From: Perkinsela sp. CCAP 1560/9
Taxonomy: Eukaryota > Protista > Euglenozoa: Kinetoplastea
Assembly: GCA_965644495.1 (NCBI GenBank)
Contig: CBFFSA010000047.1
Coordinates: 1-59,270 of the forward strand
Length of the DNA: 59,270 bases
Reading direction: 5' to 3'
Positions 2,430 through 39,542 of the stretch are shown one piece after another (position 1 is the first letter of the stretch; each line of letters opens with the position of its first letter). The position numbers and the translations under genes were made by a program. Under the pieces are notes generated by a model, which had not been told where the DNA came from, ran no database searches, and was given only the letters and a program-made list of their open reading frames with translations.

Positions 2430-3693
2430 TGCATGACTCTTTTGTAGAACAGACGGAAGTTTCTTCAATTCTAACGTACCTTCCAGAAGATTATTATTCG
2501 CCAAAAAAAGGTCGTTAAGAGTTGCAGGAAGACATGATAAGTCCACGAGTCCTTGAAACTCATTCGCGTTCATATAAACTTTATATGAGCCAAACCAAAC
2601 TTCTTTATAAGCCGCATAAAGTGCTCGGGAGTGATTGCAAATCGATTTTTCCTGTTAAATAATTCTCACTGATGTCTGTTTTATCATGCACTTATAGTGC
2701 AGAGATTTACTCACCATGTCCTTATCCCGCATACGACGGGTGGATCATGTGAGGTTTCGTCCTCGCCGGAGGTGTGCGGGTGCGGAGAGCTGGCGTCCCA
2801 GGTGCAGAGAGCTCGGTTGTCATGTGCAGGTGCAGAGAGCCGGATGCGTAATCCCCATATTACAGTTTCGGGGGCAATCCGGGTGCAGAGAGCTGCGACA
2901 GAGCCGAGGTGCGGAGAGCTGGGCGACCGCCAGGTGCAGAGAGCCGAGTCTCGTCGGCGGAGGACACGTCTAGTGGTCCTCAAGGGAGGCCACCGTGACG
3001 CATGGCCCTCTCGGAGAGGAAAAAGACAAGTCGAAAAAAGCCGAGAGGGGGAAGCACACTCACCCCAGGGGAGTGAGTCGGGGAGGGGTGAAGGGGTGAA
3101 AGCGCGTCCCCTGCTTCAGCGACAAGAGGGACAGTTCCGACCTTTTTAATTCAAATACAGATAATTCAATACAGATAATTTCAAATACAGATAATTCAAA
3201 TACATACTAGGTAACTTCGTAAGGCATATTTTGCCGGAAAATTCGTTGCTATCCATCCATGCGCCATACAAATTCACAGGCAGAGCTGTGAGGTCTGGAT
3301 TTCCTCTAAATGCATTCCCACTAATGAGCAAATGAGTGAGATCCATGAGAGGAGATAAATCGCTCAGAAATATTTCCCCTGAGAACAAATTGTTGTGAAT
3401 TTCCAAGCGAGTGATCGAGATTGGGATGTATGCAAAGTTGAAGGCCCTCCAAATATCGACAGAACCATTTTTTTTTGTAATTATCTGCTCTGAATTGCAC
3501 TCTATGCCATTCCATTTACAAGGCGCGATATCGGAACTCCAACTCTCATGTTGCGGATGTACGTCAACAATGAGGCGCTCAATATCCATTTCCTGTGGTA
3601 AACGTACGCCACGAATTTTGGCGTTGTTTTAGGGAATGGATTCGGGCAATCCATTTTCTCGTTGCGTAAAAAATATTGCAAAAAAGAAATCAA
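2430..3693 (-). pseudogene. LRR-family pseudogene interrupted by a SINE-like insertion
   Basis: PQEMDIERL..SW...PCKWNGIEC cap and LPxxLxxLxxxxN repeats; frame resumes as DISENYLTG after the 2677-3144 insert; extra frameshifts. Confidence 0.85.
2677..3144 (-). mobile_element. Non-autonomous retroelement (SINE/SIDE-like monomer A), 5'-truncated copy
   Basis: Nearly identical to 33307-33775; shares 5' and 3' stem-loops with the RT element; ends ...TGCATGATAAAACA on the minus strand. Confidence 0.85.
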
Positions 3694-24104: not shown

Positions 24105-26798
24105 GCGAGCGAACGCGGGCACAAATTAAGGAATGTCGCAAAGCGATCAAGCTGAGGGAGGAGGAAGCTACAATGCAACGCAGAGAACTAGGTGAAAGAT
24201 GGGCCGCACAGAGATTCTCTAGAAACTCGTGGACCGCGGCATCCGAAACGATTGATAAGCCTAACGGAAGAGAGGTAGAAAACACCGCATTTCCCAGCTG
24301 TGACAGATCTAGCATTGAATCATACTTTCAAGAAAGTTTTAACCCCAATGAGCAATCCTCGCGTCTCCCTCCTTCAGATCTACTAGGTCCGACAGCTAGC
24401 CAGCCAATGCAATGGAACCCGATCTCCCGTGAGGATGTCACTGCAGCTGTCACAATGAAGCGCAACGCCAGTTCTCCAGGAACCGACACGATAACTAACA
24501 AAATACTCAAAAACTGCCCATCGACACGCGAATACTTTGCATCTGTGTTCAACGATCTAATGACTTTCTCTGTGTGCCCGCTATCATGGAAAACCGCAGT
24601 AACCAGGCTGATATATAAAGCAGGTAGCAAAGAAAATCCGAAAAACTGGCGCCCGATCTCCCTTACTAGTGCTCTAGGTAAAACCTTTCACACGATCATC
24701 GCACATCGACTGACTCAACACCTGACTGAACACCATGTCATTGACCCTCAAATACAAAAAGGCTTTCTCCCTTCCATTAACGGTACACTGGAACACACCC
24801 AAACTCTTTGCTCACTCCTGCGACATTACCAGAAACACAAAACTCAATATTGCCTCGCACAACTCGACCTGAGCAATGCCTTCGGGTCTGTCCCACATCA
24901 TATCATACATGCCGCTCTGAAATGGGCCCAAGTACCGCCGGAGGTCATCCACTACATCAAAAATACCCTAACGGATGCGCACATGCGCATTAAGTGCTAC
25001 GAAGGTCTTACGCAACCTATCTCTATACGAAAAGGTGTCCTCCAAGGGGATACCCTCTCTCCTATTGTCTTCCTGATAGTGATGGAAATTGTTTTGCGAT
25101 ATGTCCGATTCTCCTGCCCGCACTTCGGTATGAAACTCCCAAACGGTCTGAACAACTTCCTTAAGGCTTTTGCTGATGACTTAACTATTCTTACTGAAAG
25201 CGACGGAGACATGCAACACGCACTTGATGCAGTTACCAAAGTGCTGGGCGAGCTAAGCCTTAAGATTAACGTGAACAAGAGTCGAATACAGTGCATGAGC
25301 ACCCGTAAAGGCGAGGAACATCCAGGCTATATGACAAGACGTCCGGAAATAAAAGTCTACGGAGAGACCATACCACACATATGTGATGTCGGTAGCACCT
25401 TCCTCGGGATGACCTTGGCACCGGGGTCCCAACAACTGAAAGAGCTGTTTCGTAAACTCGACTCAAAACTAAAACAGTGGATGGAGAACATCACACAAAG
25501 TGCCCACAGCCTTCCCGCTAAGCTTTTGATGTACAAAAATGCCGTTCTCTCACGTCTCCGTTTTCAGTTCGTTATTCACCCGTCGTTAATTTCACCCATC
25601 GTTATTCGGATCCGTGCTACGCCTTCAGAAGCGAGCCACGTCTCACATACGGAAATGGATAAACATGGCGCGTGCCGGAAGCTCTGAAGTCCTGTACTCT
25701 TGCCGAGGCTGGAACCTTACGAGTCTGTCAAAACTTTGGTACGAATGCACGGGAGAATCTATGACGCAAATGAACAAATCCAAAGATCCAAATGTCCTAC
25801 ATACACTTCGCATACGCATACAGGAAGAGCAACACAAACGTCAAAGAGGTCAAATACGACCCGCTACTTTAATTACAGAACATCTGGATGATCCCCGAAT
25901 GACTCGTCAACGGCTTCGTGAAGCACATGAGGAGGAAATAATCACGCGCTTGCAGCAACGCGCGCCCATCGCAGCCCTATGGTGGCAGTTTCCTACGGAT
26001 CCAGAAATGGCCCAAGAATTCGCTTCTGCCATAAATGGGATCCGGAATGCGAAGATCTCCCGCTTTGTAGCATCCGTCATGACTCTTACACCGCTCCCTT
26101 CCCGAGCAGCGCTTGTTCAATGGGGCCGCAGCACCTACAGTAACATGAAATGCCCTATTTGCAACGACCGAGTGCAAACCGTCAGACACACCCTTTCCGC
26201 CTGCACCACTTCACTTCAGCAAGGACGATATACTTTCCGTCATAACCTTGTCCTTGCCGAATTTGCGAAACATATTAGGGAAGCACAGGGAACTGAGTTT
26301 TCATATTTCGACCTACCAGGAGAGCGTAACCCACCAGCTTGGCTGAGGGAACACGATACACTGCTCCGTCCCGACGGTTACATTAAACTTCACAATGGGA
26401 CAGAGTTCCTCATCGAACTCACAGTCCCATGGGAGGAGAATGCGGAGAACGCTCATCGGAGAAAATCCGAGAAGTACAACATCCTTTTACATACACGGCG
26501 ACAGGAAAACCCGGACACCTACATAATAGCCTTTGAAATAGGTGCCCGGGGATTCCCCAATGGGTCATGCAAATATATTAATGCCATCTTTAACGGCGAC
26601 CATATTTTGGCCACAAAGTGTCGAGAAAGCATGACACAGATGGCCCTCAGGGGGAGTTACATACTCTGGGCTCGCCGAAATGAGGCGACATGGTCGGAGG
26701 AGGAAACGTATTGACATTGTCTTCTAAAAAGGGGGCAATCCCGTTGAATGCGGGTCATACCCCCGACTTACTCTACTGGAAAGTATGAAAAATAAAAA
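24105..26798 (+). mobile_element. Non-LTR retrotransposon (RT plus restriction-like endonuclease, HERO/NeSL-like), 5'-truncated copy
   Basis: RT: SPGTD, WRPISL, QKGF, DLSNAFGSVPH, GVLQGDTLSP, AFADD; CCHC CPIC..H..SAC, RYTFRHN, RPDG..IELTVPWE..KY; A-rich tail; near-identical to 34386-37090. Confidence 0.95.
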
Positions 26799-32741: not shown

Positions 32742-33305
32742 AAAATGGGTTAGAAAGAGTTAAATGGTATTTTATTCATAGTTTGATGCGCTAGAATGAC
32801 AAAAAATGATAAAAATCTGATTTTTTGCAGAATTTGTGGTTAAGAATTTCAGTAATTTATTCTCAAGTCGTCATATCTGCTTCAGGGGCGGCAACAATGG
32901 TGCCAGTAGTCTTAAAATTTCGTGATCTGTTGAATGCCGTAGGAATTAGGTCAAAAGCTCGCACGATACAAATTTTAGACCCCCTCCACCTTTTTCGTGA
33001 CCCCCCCTGTATAGTAGCGATGCCGCATTTTATGCATACCCCCTTACTATTCGCAATAAAAAAAGTTAAGAACACGATCCTACGAATATTGAGACGGATA
33101 GGTTCGCGTAATAAATACGTTTCAAGACTCTTCTTGAATCCACGACGGAGGAATGTTCCACCATGCTCGAGTAGGCATGTGACTCGGGCTATTGTTCCAT
33201 TAAGCCCAGGATTCCCTGTTATGTCGAATCCAGCAACAGGCTTTGCAAGATTCGAGTGCACCAGACAGGAAAGATCCACAAATCCGGTGAATTGACAATT
33301 GGATA
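32673..33305. repeat. Left copy of ~700-bp direct duplication flanking the RT element (continues at 34322-34385; right copy 39542-40241)
   Basis: Direct comparison shows only a handful of differences. Confidence 0.92.
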
Positions 33306-33306
33306 G

Positions 33307-33880
33307 TGTTTTATCATGCACTTATAGTGCAGAGATTTACTCACCATGTCCTTATCCCGCATACGACGGGTGGATCATGTGAGGTTTCGTCCTCGCCGGA
33401 GGTGTGCGGGTGCGGAGAGCTGGCGTCCCAGGTGCAGAGAGCTCGGTTGTCATGTGCAGGTGCAGAGAGCCGGATGCGTAATCCCCATATTACAGTTTCG
33501 GGGGCAATCCGGGTGCAGAGAGCTGCGACAGAGCCGAGGTGCGGAGAGCTGGGCGACCGCCAGGTGCAGAGAGCCGAGTCTCGTCGGCGGAGGACACGTC
33601 TAGTGGTCCTCAAGGGAGGCCACCGTGACGCATGGCCCTCTCGGAGAGGAAAAAGACAAGTCGAAAAAAAGCCGAGAGGGGGAAGCACACTCACTCCAGG
33701 GGAGTGAGTCGGGGAGGGGTGAAGTGGTGAAAGCGCGTCCCCTGCTTCAGCGACAAGAGGGACAGTTCCGACCTTAGTGCCGGCCGGCAACGGGCATGAA
33801 AATACAGTAAGAGTATGCCCGTTGCCGGGGAAAGAAAGGATGAACTAAGGAAAAAGTACCAACAAGGTACAGAAACTGTA
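33307..33880 (-). mobile_element. Non-autonomous retroelement monomer A, beginning with a partial SL
   Basis: Near-identical to 2677-3144 and extended 5' to TACAGTTTCTGTACCTTGTTG|GTAC; inserted in LRR coding sequence with loss of ~2 bp and no TSD. Confidence 0.85.
33860..33880 (-). ncRNA. 3' 21 nt of spliced leader followed by GTAC
   Basis: Identical to the SL 3' part at 39505-39525; resembles the kinetoplastid ...ACAGTTTCTGTAC....TTG|GT consensus. Confidence 0.75.
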
Positions 33881-33887
33881 GGTCATG

Positions 33888-34292
33888 ATCATACGCTCGT
33901 GGCGCAGAGATACGTCTCTCTGTGTGACGGCCGATACCATCGGCGCATGACCCGCATACGACGGGTGTCACACAGAGAGTGGAGTGCGAGGTAGGAGACG
34001 AGACGCCCATCGGTCATGCTACAGCACGTATAGCCATGGTTCATGCTGCAACACGGTCAAGCCGTGGGTTCATGCTGTCAGATGGTCTATCGTGGATCAT
34101 GATGCATCATGGGGAGGTCCGTTACCGCCGCACTCGCTACAGCATGTAGGGAGAGAGGGGTGCAAGTTCGCATCCCCTATACACGCATACAACGTGTCCT
34201 CCCGCTGTAGCACGCCCAGTGGTCCTCAAGGGAGGCCACCATGGCGCATAGCTCCCGGGAGAAGAAAGCACGAGAAGGAGAGAGCCGGGCTT
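33888..34292 (-). mobile_element. Non-autonomous retroelement monomer B (diverged relative of A)
   Basis: Shares GGTGGCCTCCCTTGAGGACCACT, CACCCGTCGTATGCGGG and the terminal ATCTCT-hairpin-TGA with monomer A. Confidence 0.75.
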
Positions 34293-34385
34293 TAGCACAG
34301 CCGGGCTTTAGAGAGCCGGGCTTTAACACATCAATGTTGGGAGGTAAATGAGCAAAGTCCAGCTCGCCTGTGAATAAATTGTTTT

Positions 34386-37300
34386 TATTTTTTCATACTT
34401 TCCAGTAGAGTAAGTCGGGGGTATGACCCGCATTCAACGGGATTGCCCCCTTTTTAGAAGACAATGTCAATACGTTTCCTCCTCCGACCATGTCGCCTCA
34501 TTTCGGCGAGCCCAGAGTATGTAACTCCCCCTGAGGGCCATCTGTGTCATGCTTTCTCGACACTTTGTGGCCAAAATATGGTCGCCGTTAAAGATGGCAT
34601 TAATATATTTGCATGACCCATTGGGGAATCCCCGGGCACCTATTTCAAAGGCTATTATGTAGGTGTCCGGGTTTTCCTGTCGCCGTGTATGTAAAAGGAT
34701 GTTGTACTTCTCGGATTTTCTCCGATGAGCGTTCTCCGCATTCTCCTCCCATGGGACTGTGAGTTCGATGAGGAACTCTGTCCCATTGTGAAGTTTAATG
34801 TAACCGTCGGGACGGAGCAGTGTATCGTGTTCCCTCAGCCAAGCTGGTGGGTTACGCTCTCCTGGTAGGTCGAAATATGAAAACTCAGTTCCCTGTGCTT
34901 CCCTAATATGTTTCGCAAATTCGGCAAGGACAAGGTTATGACGGAAAGTATATCGTCCTTGCTGAAGTGAAGTGGTGCAGGCGGAAAGGGTGTGTCTGAC
35001 GGTTTGCACTCGGTCGTTGCAAATAGGGCATTTCATGTTACTGTAGGTGCTGCGGCCCCATTGAACAAGCGCTGCTCGGGAAGGGAGCGGTGTAAGAGGG
35101 AAGGGAGCGGTGTCATGACGGATGCTACAAAGCGGGAGATCTTCGCATTCCGGATCCCATTTATGGCAGAAGCGAATTCTTGGGCCATTTCTGGATCCGT
35201 AGGAAACTGCCACCATAGGGCTGCGATGGGCGCGCGTTGCTGCAAGCGCGTGATTATTTCCTCCTCATGTGCTTCACGAAGCCGTTGACGAGTCATTCGG
35301 GGATCATCCAGATGTTCTGTAATTAAAGTAGCGGGTCGTATTTGACCTCTTTGACGTTTGTGTTGCTCTTCCTGTATGCGTATGCGAAGTGTATGTAGGA
35401 CATTTGGATCTTTGGATTTGTTCATTTGCGTCATAGATTCTCCCGTGCATTCGTACCAAAGTTTTGACAGACTCGTAAGGTTCCAGCCTCGGCAAGAGTA
35501 CAGGACTTCAGAGCTTCCGGCACGCGCCATGTTTATCCATTTCCGTATGTGAGACGTGGCTCGCTTCTGAAGGCGTAGCACGGATCCGAATAACGATGGG
35601 TGAAATTAACGACGGGTGAATAACGAACTGAAAACGGAGACGTGAGAGAACGGCATTTTTGTACATCAAAAGCTTAGCGGGAAGGCTGTGGGCACTTTGT
35701 GTGATGTTCTCCATCCACTGTTTTAGTTTTGAGTCGAGTTTACGAAACAGCTCTTTCAGTTGTTGGGACCCCGGTGCCAAGGTCGTCCCGAGGAAGGTGC
35801 TACCGACATCACATATGTGTGGTATGGTCTCTCCGTAGACTTTTATTTCCGGACGTCTTGTCATATAGCCTGGATGTTCCTCGCCTTTACGGGTGCTCAT
35901 GCACTGTATTCGACTCTTGTTCACGTTAATCTTAAGGCTTAGCTCGCCCAGCACTTTGGTAACTGCATCAAGTGCGTGTTGCATGTCTCCGTCGCTTTCA
36001 GTAAGAATAGTTAAGTCATCAGCAAAAGCCTTAAGGAAGTTGTTCAGACCGTTTGGGAGTTTCATACCGAAGTGCGGGCAGGAGAATCGGACATATCGCA
36101 AAACAATTTCCATCACTATCAGGAAGACAATAGGAGAGAGGGTATCCCCTTGGAGGACACCTTTTCGTATAGAGATAGGTTGCGTAAGACCTTCGTAGCA
36201 CTTAATGCGCATGTGCGCATCCGTTAGGGTATTTTTGATGTAGTGGATGACCTCCGGCGGTACTTGGGCCCATTTCAGAGCGGCATGTATGATATGATGT
36301 GGGACAGACCCGAAGGCATTGCTCAGGTCGAGTTGTGCGAGGCAATATTGAGTTTTGTGTTTCTGGTAATGTCGCAGGAGTGAGCAAAGAGTTTGGGTGT
36401 GTTCCAGTGTACCGTTAATGGAAGGGAGAAAGCCTTTTTGTATTTGAGGGTCAATGACATGGTGTTCAGTCAGGTGTTGAGTCAGTCGATGTGCGATGAT
36501 CGTGTGAAAGGTTTTACCTAGAGCACTAGTAAGGGAGATCGGGCGCCAGTTTTTCGGATTTTCTTTGTTACCTGCTTTATATATCAGCCTGGTTACTGCG
36601 GTTTTCCATGATAGCGGGCACACAGAGAAAGTCATTAGATCGTTGAACACAGATGCAAAGTATTCGTGTGTCGATGGGCAGTTTTTGAGTATTTTGTTAG
36701 TTATCGTGTCGGTTCCTGGAGAACTGGCGTTGCGCTTCATTGTGACAGCTGCAGTGACATCCTCACGGGAGATCGGGTTCCATTGCATTGGCTGGCTAGC
36801 TGTCGGACCTAGTAGATCTGAAGGAGGGAGACGCGAGGATTGCTCATTGGGGTTAAAACTTTCTTGAAAGTATGATTCAATGCTAGATCTGTCACAGCTG
36901 GGAAATGCGGTGTTTTCTACCTCTCTTCCGTTAGGCTTATCAATCGTTTCGGATGCCGCGGTCCACGAGTTTCTAGAGAATCTCTGTGCGGCCCATCTTT
37001 CATCTAGATCTCTGCGTTGCATTGTAGCTTCCTCCTCCCTCAGCTTGATCGCTTTGCGACATTCCTTAATTTGTGCCCGCGTTCTCTCGCGTTCCGCCCG
37101 GTTCCTCGTGTAACGTAGCGATCGTTTCATCGTTTCTAAATGGTGTTTGAGATCGGTTACGGTTCTTTCCGCCGCGAGTGGTCGGTATCTACGTCGTGCA
37201 TGTCCGGTACTGGTCCTTATCAGGAAACCTTTCGTCGGATTTGCTTCTATGGCGACTTCATGTGCTGAGACTGCTAATGCGGCACTGAGTAATTCCGCGT

Positions 37301-39542
37301 TTCGTACAGCTGCCTCTTTATCCGGTGTAGGGGTAAGTAGTTGAATGCATCTCTCTTTCGCTCTCGATTCGACAATCCGCCACTGTACCTCATTTAGTCG
37401 TATCGTAACCTTACCTCCGCTTATGGCTTCGTGCTTCTGGAGAAGTTGCGTTTGCAATCTGGTTCGAGAGTAGGCTTCTTGCTCGGGGGAGGCAGGGTAC
37501 TCTGCAGCCGGAGGAGGGCTGTTCGGGTGCTGGATGGCTGCTGCATCGGTCTCTGAGTCTTCGGTGTCTCTTTGCGTAGTGTTCCTCCGGGCATACACTG
37601 GTCCGTATACTTTGCAGCACTTGTGGGCACATTCCACTTTGTTTCGACATGTGTGCTGACACGGGTGCAAACTAAGCTTCGTAGGTGCCCTACTGATAGT
37701 TTGGATGCGGTGAGGGGATGCTTCTCGGCGCGGGTTCTTTTCATAGTGTACGTCTGAGGGATCTTCCTCCCGCTTATGTAGTGTAATATGCAGATGTTGA
37801 AGGAGGGGCACATCCCGTCCGGCAAGAACCTTGAGGATTGCGCGGCCGAGTGCTCCCGCGGAGCTGTATGACTCACCAAGTTTGAAGGTATCATCTTTGT
37901 AGAGGGAAGTCCAGCTGGCGTGCCGTCGGTGTTCTTGCGCGTGCGCTTGTTTTACAACCCTTATGTAGTCACATCCCTGGTGATCCATGAGCTCGTCCAG
38001 TGAGGCTGGCTGAACAATTAGGTCGTGGGAGCTTCCGTTCCCTGAAAGCATTTTACTGAGTGCCGCTTGCGCTGCTTGATGAGAAGCAATTCTGGCCTTG
38101 ACTAGAGGGGATTCGCTGGCGGCCCGGACGTCTGGAAAATACCGCCAGGTGAGATCTGTGAGTGTTCTTATTTTTAAGGGGCGCGCCCGGCTTTGGACAA
38201 AATGAAGATTTTGTTTGTGTTGAAGCGATGCACTCAGTCCAGTAGGTGTTGTGGCGGCGTCATCTAGGTTTCCCGAGTGTTGGTTGTTGAACACCCAGGT
38301 GGGAACTTCGTCCGTGCTTTCTTCCAGTAGGATGTGATGGTCTACGGAGACGCTAGGTACCGGTAGTGGGGAAGGGAGGCGAGCGAGCACCTCGGGATAC
38401 AGAGATTCTGTATTTTGGTTTTCGTATCCAGGGATCTCGTCGTTTTTAGTGGCACTGCATGAGGTAGCTATCGAGGCGTCGTTTTTGCTGTCGCAGTTTG
38501 GTTGCTCGGGAGCGCGATTTTCAAGGTGCAATAGTGGATTCGTACAATTGGGTTCATCATTCTCTGCTTGTACATTATGCGCGCTTGGAGCTTTGGGGGT
38601 AAGGAAGTCTATGTACCAGAGAAAGATGCGTAGTGGTAATTTTACAAGTTCCAAAATGATGGTCGATGTTGATGTCTTCTTGGTCTTCGCAAGTAGCAAC
38701 CAAAGTTCATCGTATTTCCGTGAGACAGGCGTTTTGAAGTTGGAGAGGGTTAGATAGATCTGGTTGATTGCCACTGGAACTAGAGGTATGCTGCTTCGCA
38801 AAAGACTGAGCGCATACCATGTGAGTGCGAATATTAAGTGGACAAGTGTGCAGAATAGTTTCATGAGGTACTTCACGTTATGAAATAGTATTGCAACCTT
38901 GAGGGTCTGCTCCGTGTAGGGGTTGCTCGTTTGATCTGGAGTAGTGTGTACTAAGTGGCGTTTGCAGCAGGCATGCTTGCATGTGTTTTTGTTTAGACAT
39001 TTATGTTTACATGGCTTCGTTTGAGGTGGTTCTGTAGAGTTTCAGCAATATGCAGGTTGGGTTACGAAGTAGGGTATTTTCATGAATATTGTCGCCAGTA
39101 ATGCTTCGATGATGCAATATACTCTCCCGAAGAATCTCGGTGGGGTGCTTATATTCGTCAAGTTCGGTGCTGTAGGAATATCGATTTTGTTTATGCGAGG
39201 CTGTTGCCTCTTACAACACGGGTGAAGACATGTTCGTTTGTTGAGGCACCTGTGTTTACATGGTGTTCCGTGGGTCATGGGGGTTTGCGGTACCATATTT
39301 GCAGTCACTAGTTCGGTTGGCGTGACGCATGATGGTGGTTCGGAGGGGGCACCATTCTCGTCGACGGGACGTCCATGGTCTAAGAGATCAACGGTTGACA
39401 TATCAACGCCGCGTGGTCCTCCCGTAAGGTCCTGCGGCGCATCAGCATGAGTGCAATGTGAAGGGGGTCGCGTCATTGTAACGATAAAGATAAGAGAAAA
39501 AAAACAACAAGGTACAGAAACTGTATCTTTATCGTTCAAATT
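34386..39542 (-). mobile_element. Apparently full-length HERO/NeSL-like non-LTR retrotransposon (SL - 3x Zn finger - RT - CCHC - RLE)
   Basis: One reading path from ATG 39476 to stop 34467, broken by an in-frame TGA (39042-39044), a +1 shift near 35600 and a 14-bp duplication near 35100; same RT/RLE motifs as the plus-strand copy. Confidence 0.95.
39505..39542 (-). ncRNA. Complete spliced-leader (mini-exon) sequence AATTTGAACGATAAAGATACAGTTTCTGTACCTTGTTG at the retrotransposon 5' end
   Basis: 38 nt with the euglenozoan-conserved ACAGTTTCTGTAC core and TTG end; located exactly at the element/flank junction. Confidence 0.85.

Follow-up and report, generated by a model that had tools for sequence, protein, structure and literature searches.

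A pile-up of retroelements, with all of its features on the minus strand, lies at positions 33305–39542 of a 59,270-nt stretch of DNA from the kinetoplastid Perkinsela sp. CCAP 1560/9 (contig CBFFSA010000047.1), which was analysed as a whole and is referred to below as the window. In element orientation, the pile-up begins with a 5.16-kb retrotransposon that lacks long terminal repeats (non-LTR; 39542→34383, labelled family E here), which encodes a reverse transcriptase (RT) and a restriction-like endonuclease (RLE) and starts with a spliced leader (SL). It is followed by one leucine-rich repeat (LRR) unit of a host gene, and then by copies of two non-coding families, B and A; a third non-coding family, C, was found at other loci. 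We consider it likely that the pile-up represents three insertions in one LRR gene, i.e., a dead RT–RLE element E, a truncated B and a full A, all members of one superfamily that propagates by the mechanism proposed below. An earlier note on this DNA had described A and B as tandem monomers. This does not hold, as they are dispersed families inserted site-specifically in one LRR gene rather than units of a repeat array, and the window copy of B (34289–33881), called a monomer there, is 5′-truncated from an SL-headed element of ~610 nt.

The genome searched comprises 21 Mb in 110 contigs (designated C1, C3, C10, etc.). A profile of the RLE domain gave at least 148 matches in it, and 3′ ends were read at 30 fetched loci; among the RLE matches listed, about 15 have open frames of 1,500–1,860 aa. 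With such open frames present and copies that are 99–100% identical, the superfamily appears to have been active recently. Its database relatives (P0002–P0009) probably come from the same organism. The locus at C10:~499.5 kb is also found, with an identical 3′ flank, in a metagenome assembly of the European Nucleotide Archive (ENA), ERZ24900291 (L051 vs. L046).

Anatomy of the elements

The RT domain of E (35877–36566) matches Pfam RVT_1 with E = 3e-31, and its best solved relative is R2Bm (E = 4e-27); the match to L1 ORF2p is about 1e-17. A CCHC knuckle and an RLE domain were identified by profile match at 34473–35099, and a profile of the C-terminus matches the zebra-finch R2 endonuclease (R2Tg, E = 3e-8) through CCHC, RH(D/N), PD, (D/E)xT, K..KY and GARG. 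No apurinic/apyrimidinic endonuclease (APE, Exo_endo_phos) domain was found by Pfam. With a non-LTR RT and a C-terminal CCHC plus PD-(D/E)xK-type endonuclease, E is an RLE-type non-LTR retrotransposon, as the earlier note had recognised; the motifs RH-D/N, ELT and GARG, on which a likeness to HERO had been based, are not diagnostic of that group, since they also align to avian R2.

The first 38 nt of E (39505–39542) are 36/38 identical to the exon of the SL RNA genes, including an exact 32-mer (39536–39505), and neither an SL promoter nor an SL intron surrounds this head. A 13-nt anti-SL stretch (39480–39492), able to pair with SL nt 7–19, lies just before the ATG at 39476; the first 75 nt of E fold with this SL/anti-SL pairing (−14.5 kcal/mol), and the stretch is also present in the P0002 family. 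According to the frame map, E once had a single open reading frame (ORF) of ~1,660 aa (34467–39476), which is broken in the window by a TGA at 39042–39044 (CGA in the copy on C3), a 13-nt duplication at 35594–35606 and a 14-nt duplication at 35099–35112. The element ends in a 3′ module (34383–34450) consisting of an enclosing stem, a CCCG..CGGG hairpin (34427–34441), CUCU (34407–34410), a terminal hairpin (34397–34406), AUGA (34393–34396) and an A-rich tail, with no poly(A). The N-terminal 400 aa, which are missing from P0006/F10-type families, contain three Cys/His knuckles (CxHxCxNKxxCxHxCCK) and a hydrophobic stretch (38950–39290 and 37620–37680); the knuckle region has no Pfam match.

About five copies of the E family were found, i.e., the window copy, a 5′-truncated second copy within the window (24105–26792, plus strand, 99% identity, without the 14-nt duplication), the C3 copy, one 3′ fragment and one diverged fragment. 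The C3 copy is split by a 4.9-kb insert (L042/L058, C3:385262–390176), and this insert is an apparently intact P0007-type RLE element on the opposite strand, with a 1,593-aa open frame. E is a dead, low-copy family.

The full copy of A (33305–33880, 575 nt) starts with the 3′ 21-mer of the SL (33860–33880), carries a 5′ hairpin at 33596–33631 and ends in a 3′ module (33305–33379) with CUCU at 33331–33334 and AUGA at 33314–33317. About 27 matches to A elsewhere, a lower bound, are 85–100% identical, and other A copies keep up to ~29–31 nt of the SL. A second copy in the window (2677–3144, minus strand) is 5′-truncated and lies at the LRR register described below, with the flank ..ISENYLTGKIDLQSLP. 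The window copy of B (33881–34289) has its 5′ hairpin at 34212–34247 and its 3′ module at 33881–33973 (CUCU 33906–33909, AUGA 33889–33892), and its 5′ junction reads as three slipped copies of AAAGCCCGGCT.. (34290–34326). It is at the point where this copy turns ragged that other B copies extend 5′ into an SL-headed leader; at least 14 copies of B elsewhere are 99–100% identical.

Families A, B and C have a common layout, in which a ~290-nt 5′ module (~78% identity between families) is followed by a variable middle and a 3′ module. The description of the non-coding partners as bipartite and structured is thus borne out, with folds in all families. In A and B, the variable middles consist of tandem partial copies of the family's own terminal motif (A, 33390–33590; B, 34000–34130, both minus); the repeated part is the CUCU-stem half in A (..GCTCTCTGCACC..) and the AUGA half in B (..GCATGA(A/C)C..).

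The 5′-hairpin stretch of A, B and C reads as a P0006-like ORF start in which CGA has become TGA, so that these families resemble 5′ + 3′ derivatives of a P0006/F10-type autonomous element, not of E. The inner stem-loop of their hairpin is one base off that of the P0006 family, and the terminal 28 nt of A are 93% identical to those of family F10 (C1:3742189–3747217, 1,637-aa frame). By these similarities, A and B have closer autonomous relatives than E. The partnership of a long and a short interspersed element (LINE/SINE) claimed in the earlier note therefore stands in part: cis motifs and target are common to the autonomous and non-coding elements, whereas the A end matches F10 and the hairpin is nearest that of P0006, suggesting a partnership with the superfamily of at least 148 RLE copies and not with the window element.

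Spliced-leader heads

Eight SL RNA genes were found in the genome, in which the 38-nt exon is followed by GTATGAG, as read for example at C1:661319 and C1:661616, and all eight have the intact junction of exon and GTATGAGAAGC. These two genes are 297 bp apart and adjoin a 5S rRNA gene (Rfam, 99 bits; L001, C1:659819–662850), which was the only Rfam match at this SL-gene locus; just downstream of the pair is the end of a B/C-type element in opposite orientation. The exon bears the kinetoplastid core CAGTTTCTGTAC. The 38-mer that the earlier note had read as an SL at the head of E, and whose 3′ 21-mer it had read at the start of A, thus occurs in SL genes and is, on this genomic evidence, a genuine spliced leader, the use of which on mRNAs is predicted from DNA only. 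Genome-wide, 397 occurrences of the 32-mer were counted, and the copies sampled outside the SL genes are at 5′ ends of repeats; the 20-mer core occurs twice in the window vs. 0 expected.

All autonomous families with fetched 5′ ends, namely E and seven others (the families of P0002, P0006, P0007, P0009 and F10, and those in L087 and L088), are SL-headed, with the leader joined at the exact 3′ end of the SL exon. The non-coding families A, B and C are SL-headed in the same manner. For one autonomous leader, 11 of 11 copies carry the SL, and leaders of the A/B/C type are preceded by ..TTG in 40 of 40 cases and by AG in none. Every full A, B or C copy begins within the SL, and the starting point varies among near-identical copies (CGATAAAGA.., GATAAAGA.., TAAAGA.., AAAGA.., TACAG..); none of them carries parental flank upstream of the SL. 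The window copy of E, with all 38 nt of the SL, is an exception among the RLE-family heads (L011–L030, L093–L103). An origin of the A/B leaders from the SL intron was also considered and rejected, as the two have only GTA in common.

Alternative junctions were observed as well. Three A copies, drawn from both A subfamilies (L021, L025, L026), lack exactly 15 nt (GTAC..CCTTAG), and in these copies the SL follows an AG after a pyrimidine tract. At L015, an SL is joined after ACAG within an older SL. Both kinds of variant are expected products of trans-splicing acting on transcripts of copies that were already SL-headed. A trans-spliced intermediate is thus consistent with the exact joins at the exon end, the lack of an SL promoter or intron, and the alternative junctions after AG; the recurrent re-splicing variants, as read from the copies, argue for trans-splicing as the source of the SL, and the 5′ end is best read as derived from the SL.

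It could instead be that each family captured the SL a single time and thereafter passed it on as ordinary element DNA, each new copy taking its SL from the transcript of its parent. Such a history would suit the ..TTG that precedes all A/B/C and F10/P0006-type leaders, none of which follows an AG acceptor, and the narrow range (SL nt 10–14) in which the heads begin. However, the truncation points differ among near-identical copies and no parental flank lies upstream of the SL, the recurrence of the short variant in both A subfamilies and the double SL of L015 indicate that fresh SLs are added to SL-headed transcripts, and unrelated poly(A) retroelements of the same genome are SL-headed too. 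We regard a single capture as unlikely on these grounds.

The poly(A)-tailed families keep nearly the whole SL, unlike the RLE families. Poly(A)-ending SL-headed repeats, unrelated to the RLE elements, were observed at C1:1.44–1.49 Mb (L003–L010) and are of two kinds, a ~680-nt unit and an element with an RNase H domain in its first ORF (Pfam, E = 3e-13). Both bear an almost complete SL head (..TCTTTAACG..), which often stands directly after the poly(A) of the preceding unit.

Structured RNA ends and the insertion register

In 28 of the 30 RLE loci fetched, CUCU-hairpin-AUGA was found 46–82 nt past the stop codon, followed by an A/U-rich tail of 8–12 nt without poly(A). All 18 distinct CUCU-to-AUGA segments, including those of A, B and C, form perfect hairpins of 3–6 bp, with a shuffle fraction per sequence of 0.001–0.035 for 17 of them; at L082 the regular expression was anchored on an earlier CUCU, and the hairpin read by eye has 6 bp. 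Upstream of the terminal hairpin there is an enclosing stem with an inner hairpin of consensus NNCG..CGNN, which covaries (CCCG/CGGG, CGCG/CGCG, CUCG/CGAG, CACG/CGUG and, in family C, UCCG/CGGA) and the loop of which remains U-rich. The 3′ ends that the earlier note had described for E, B and A are present as stated, with CUCU-hairpin-AUGA preceded by a CCCG..CGGG hairpin, and the CCCG(..)UGCGGG seen there is the E/A/B version of this covarying inner hairpin.

The 5′ hairpin has one architecture in 17 sequences covering all families, in which a small asymmetric internal loop separates the outer from the inner stem, the 3′ strand of the inner stem has a bulged or mismatched A, and the tip is a tetraloop, with energies of −14 to −25 kcal/mol and z from −0.8 to −4. 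Its pairs were tabulated from the individual folds of these sequences, because in a MAFFT alignment the outer stems were shifted against each other between families. Both-side changes (A-U to G-C, C-G to U-A) were found at four or more positions, so that the covariation expected for the shared motifs is observed in both the 5′ hairpin and the inner 3′ hairpin. In E the hairpin (39406–39440; −19.3 kcal/mol, z about −2) lies within the ORF at the peptide ..QDLTGGPRGV... It had previously been drawn as a stem-loop common to E, B and A; it is indeed present in all three and in the second A copy of the window, with a real compensatory change (GCGCC/GGCGU vs. GCGUC/GACGU), but the inner arms of E are unpaired as drawn, and the minimum-energy fold pairs GG/CC and CCUU/GAGG instead. 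In the autonomous elements the hairpin overlaps codons ~15–28 (..DLPRGS.., ..QDLTGGPRGV..), where the base pairs are kept between families with different flanking residues, showing that the RNA is the constrained object.

The last observation bears on a reading in which the shared 5′ and 3′ motifs are leftovers of common descent with no RNA function, and E, B and A lie next to each other by chance or through template jumping. A, B and C do look like 5′ + 3′ deletion derivatives, their hairpin region being a P0006-like ORF start with CGA → TGA, and R2-type RTs jump between templates. However, the stems stay paired through changes on both sides and the loop and flank signatures are fixed in families with only 40–50% protein identity, the pairs hold in the coding overlap where amino acids change, and the adjacency is accounted for by a common LRR register. 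We therefore consider this reading very unlikely.

This register was found in the flanks. Between E and B lies one LRR unit of the host gene (34327–34381, minus, NLFTGELDFAHLPPNIDV, by hand translation), in the same register as at other insertion sites, and the host gene goes on downstream of A (KTLSNCQFTGFVDL..), where the flank at 33100–33304 (minus) translates as LRR-like coding sequence (KTLSNCQFTGFVDLSCL..GNPGLNGTI..); Pfam found no LRR in the short ORF of this segment. For at least 13 A and B copies, translation of the flanks in element orientation yields 24-residue leucine-rich repeats, and Pfam matched LRR_1, LRR_8, LRR_6 and LRR_4 in flanks of other copies. The upstream flank stops 2–3 residues past LPxxL. 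The distance from AUGA to the Asn codon of xLxxNxFxG is 16–20 nt in at least 13 A/B copies, 17–23 nt in five autonomous families, and 20 nt (hand reading) in an E-family copy (L043/L080). Since the repeat unit is 72 nt, this clustering is far beyond chance, and all copies at the LRR register are inserted in sense. In the window, E is followed by one LRR unit and then by B and A at the next register, and the second A copy lies at the same register, suggesting that the adjacency of E, B and A arose by repeated site-specific insertion; the direct B–A junction could reflect either reuse of the site or a template jump. As far as the literature searched shows, a protein-coding repeat register is not a described class of RLE target.

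Microsatellites, namely (TA)n, (TG)n, (AAAT)n or (ATC)n, take the place of LRR sequence at the ends of several autonomous families (L053, L054, L065, L072, L074, L060–L064), suggesting that target preference has diversified within the superfamily. Pile-ups downstream of autonomous copies recur in the window and at L088 (C10:472460–473270), where a C copy comes no more than about 10 nt after an autonomous element and is itself followed by a further head of the A/B/C type.

Proposed mechanism and relation to known systems

Non-LTR elements normally solve the "5′ end problem" by an internal promoter or a ribozyme. For the superfamily described here, we propose that sense copies lying in polycistronic units are transcribed with them, and that the RNA gains its SL by trans-splicing. 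The RT–RLE protein would read the structured 3′ module and begin target-primed reverse transcription there, and the SL would be reverse-transcribed into each new copy, usually minus its first 10–13 nt. The 5′ hairpin would be a second cis signal, which may act like the 5′ protein-binding RNA of R2. Either the endonuclease or flank homology would steer the insertion, in sense, to the LRR register between LPxxLxx and xLxxNxFxG. Families A, B and C, which retain nothing but leader, 5′ hairpin and 3′ module, would be mobilised in trans. As they have both RNA modules and the target in common with autonomous families, i.e., the 3′ recognition end and the insertion-site preference expected of a LINE/SINE pair, mobilisation of A, B and C by a partner protein is the natural reading, and we infer it from these likenesses.

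Several points weigh against this mechanism. The RLE-family heads nearly always start at SL nt 10–14 (..(G)ATAAAGATACAG), which is odd for random truncation. In SL-headed DNA the leader is preceded by TTG, not AG, so that the renewal of the junction in each round is unexplained, and no SL-less master, with AG directly before the leader, was found in the assembly. No regular target-site duplication was found. A BLAST comparison of E with A and B gave no significant similarity beyond the SL, and the partnership accordingly rests on short structured motifs and a common target. Lastly, both the trans-splicing of element RNAs and the use of the SL on mRNAs are deduced from genomic copies. More tentatively, an SL-capped, trans-spliced intermediate may be combined with a two-site RNA code that homes to the LRR register and is copied by non-coding parasites; in the boldest form of this idea, the pyrimidine-rich ..TTG remnant of the SL would itself serve as the next 3′ splice region, making the junction self-renewing without an AG.

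A CRE/SLACS-style arrangement, in which the SL promoter drives masters inserted at the exon end of SL RNA genes and the dispersed copies therefore carry the SL, is highly improbable even though kinetoplastid CRE-clade elements target SL genes (PMC12278014) and the A/B/C leaders open with GTA as the SL intron does, because all eight SL genes found are intact at the exon–GTATGAGAAGC junction, neither an SL promoter nor an SL intron occurs in the flanks of E, A and B, which consist of LRR or other sequence, and about 10 different leaders join at the exact exon end, with AG-dependent variants that need trans-splicing.

Under the proposed mechanism, the DNA copies would record that the template RNA bore the host SL, which provides a natural tag for retrotransposition intermediates under polycistronic transcription. 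In addition, the many families lend themselves to covariation analysis of the signals recognised by an R2-like RT at the two ends of its template RNA, and the superfamily likely shapes the LRR gene family of its host protist.

A quick RT tree of unlabelled database proteins took in six families of this genome, which form a single clade (SH-aLRT 99) with environmental RLE elements as its sister group. A word-indexed search with the RT matched unnamed proteins and spider proteins labelled "R2", and with the C-terminal region only the genome's own families. An exhaustive profile search gave 5,038 hits without names, and the named matches of a search from an external relative were only coral and oomycete hypothetical proteins. 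The 120 best RT matches included no SLACS-like protein, which is weak evidence as the search was word-filtered, and none of the hits that had names was SLACS, CZAR, CRE1 or CRE2. Among the relatives of the RLE domain, a name was attached only to a Perkinsela "polyprotein", the locus of which has neither an SL head nor CUCU-hairpin-AUGA; the nearest external RLE elements are likewise not SL-headed.

The elements resemble the CRE clade (SLACS, CZAR, CRE1/2) in their kinetoplastid host, their combination of RT and RLE and their link to the spliced leader. CRE elements have poly(A) ends and occupy one fixed site within the SL RNA genes (PMC12278014), whereas here the SL is at the element's own 5′ end, no insertion inside an SL RNA gene was found (LRR genes, microsatellites or other elements make up the flanks), and the elements end without poly(A) in CUCU-hairpin-AUGA plus 8–12 nt. 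HERO and NeSL/Utopia elements are similar in being RLE-bearing, in having a single ORF and in including some microsatellite-targeting families (here (TA)n, (TG)n and (AAAT)n). NeSL, too, is connected with the SL; it targets SL1 genes and carries a Ulp1 protease (PMC4640811). The clade also has U2 or tRNA targets and bears the protease N-terminally; the present elements have a different target, and no Ulp1 protease (Peptidase_C48) was found in them by Pfam. The pairs ingi/RIME and L1Tc/NARTc also consist of an autonomous kinetoplastid element and short derivatives with common ends, but they are APE-type and poly(A)-tailed, with a Pr77 promoter/ribozyme start and unspliced transcripts (PMC1874656, PMC3185411), in contrast to the RLE-type, SL-headed elements without poly(A) described here.

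In the full-text literature searched, no description of SL-headed retrotransposons in Kinetoplastea was found, the nearest analogue being the SL relics of dinoflagellates. Dinoflagellate retrogenes carry a relict SL, sometimes in tandem, at the 5′ end of their DNA copies (PMC5585692, PMC6050394). In both cases, DNA copies of trans-spliced RNAs would retain the SL at their 5′ end; the dinoflagellate copies derive from cellular mRNAs with poly(A), whereas those of Perkinsela are retrotransposons and non-coding parasites in Kinetoplastea.

The comparison with R2 and its short internally deleted elements (SIDEs), known from arthropods and birds, involves both differences and likenesses. R2 targets 28S rDNA and has a 5′ hepatitis delta virus-like ribozyme, whereas the elements here target an LRR codon register, carry an SL at the 5′ end and, as far as the six families in the RT tree show, form their own clade; Rfam found no hepatitis delta virus-like or other ribozyme in the window and no other family, and Pfam found no N-terminal C2H2/Myb domain. 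We note three features that they have in common with R2. First, a single ORF encodes an RT followed by a CCHC knuckle and an RLE, with R2Bm (RT) and R2Tg (RLE) as the best solved relatives. Second, a structured 3′ untranslated region without poly(A) is accompanied by a second RNA element at the 5′ end. Third, insertion is site-specific and in sense into a repeated target, with variable 5′ junctions and with short derivatives that keep both ends of the element.

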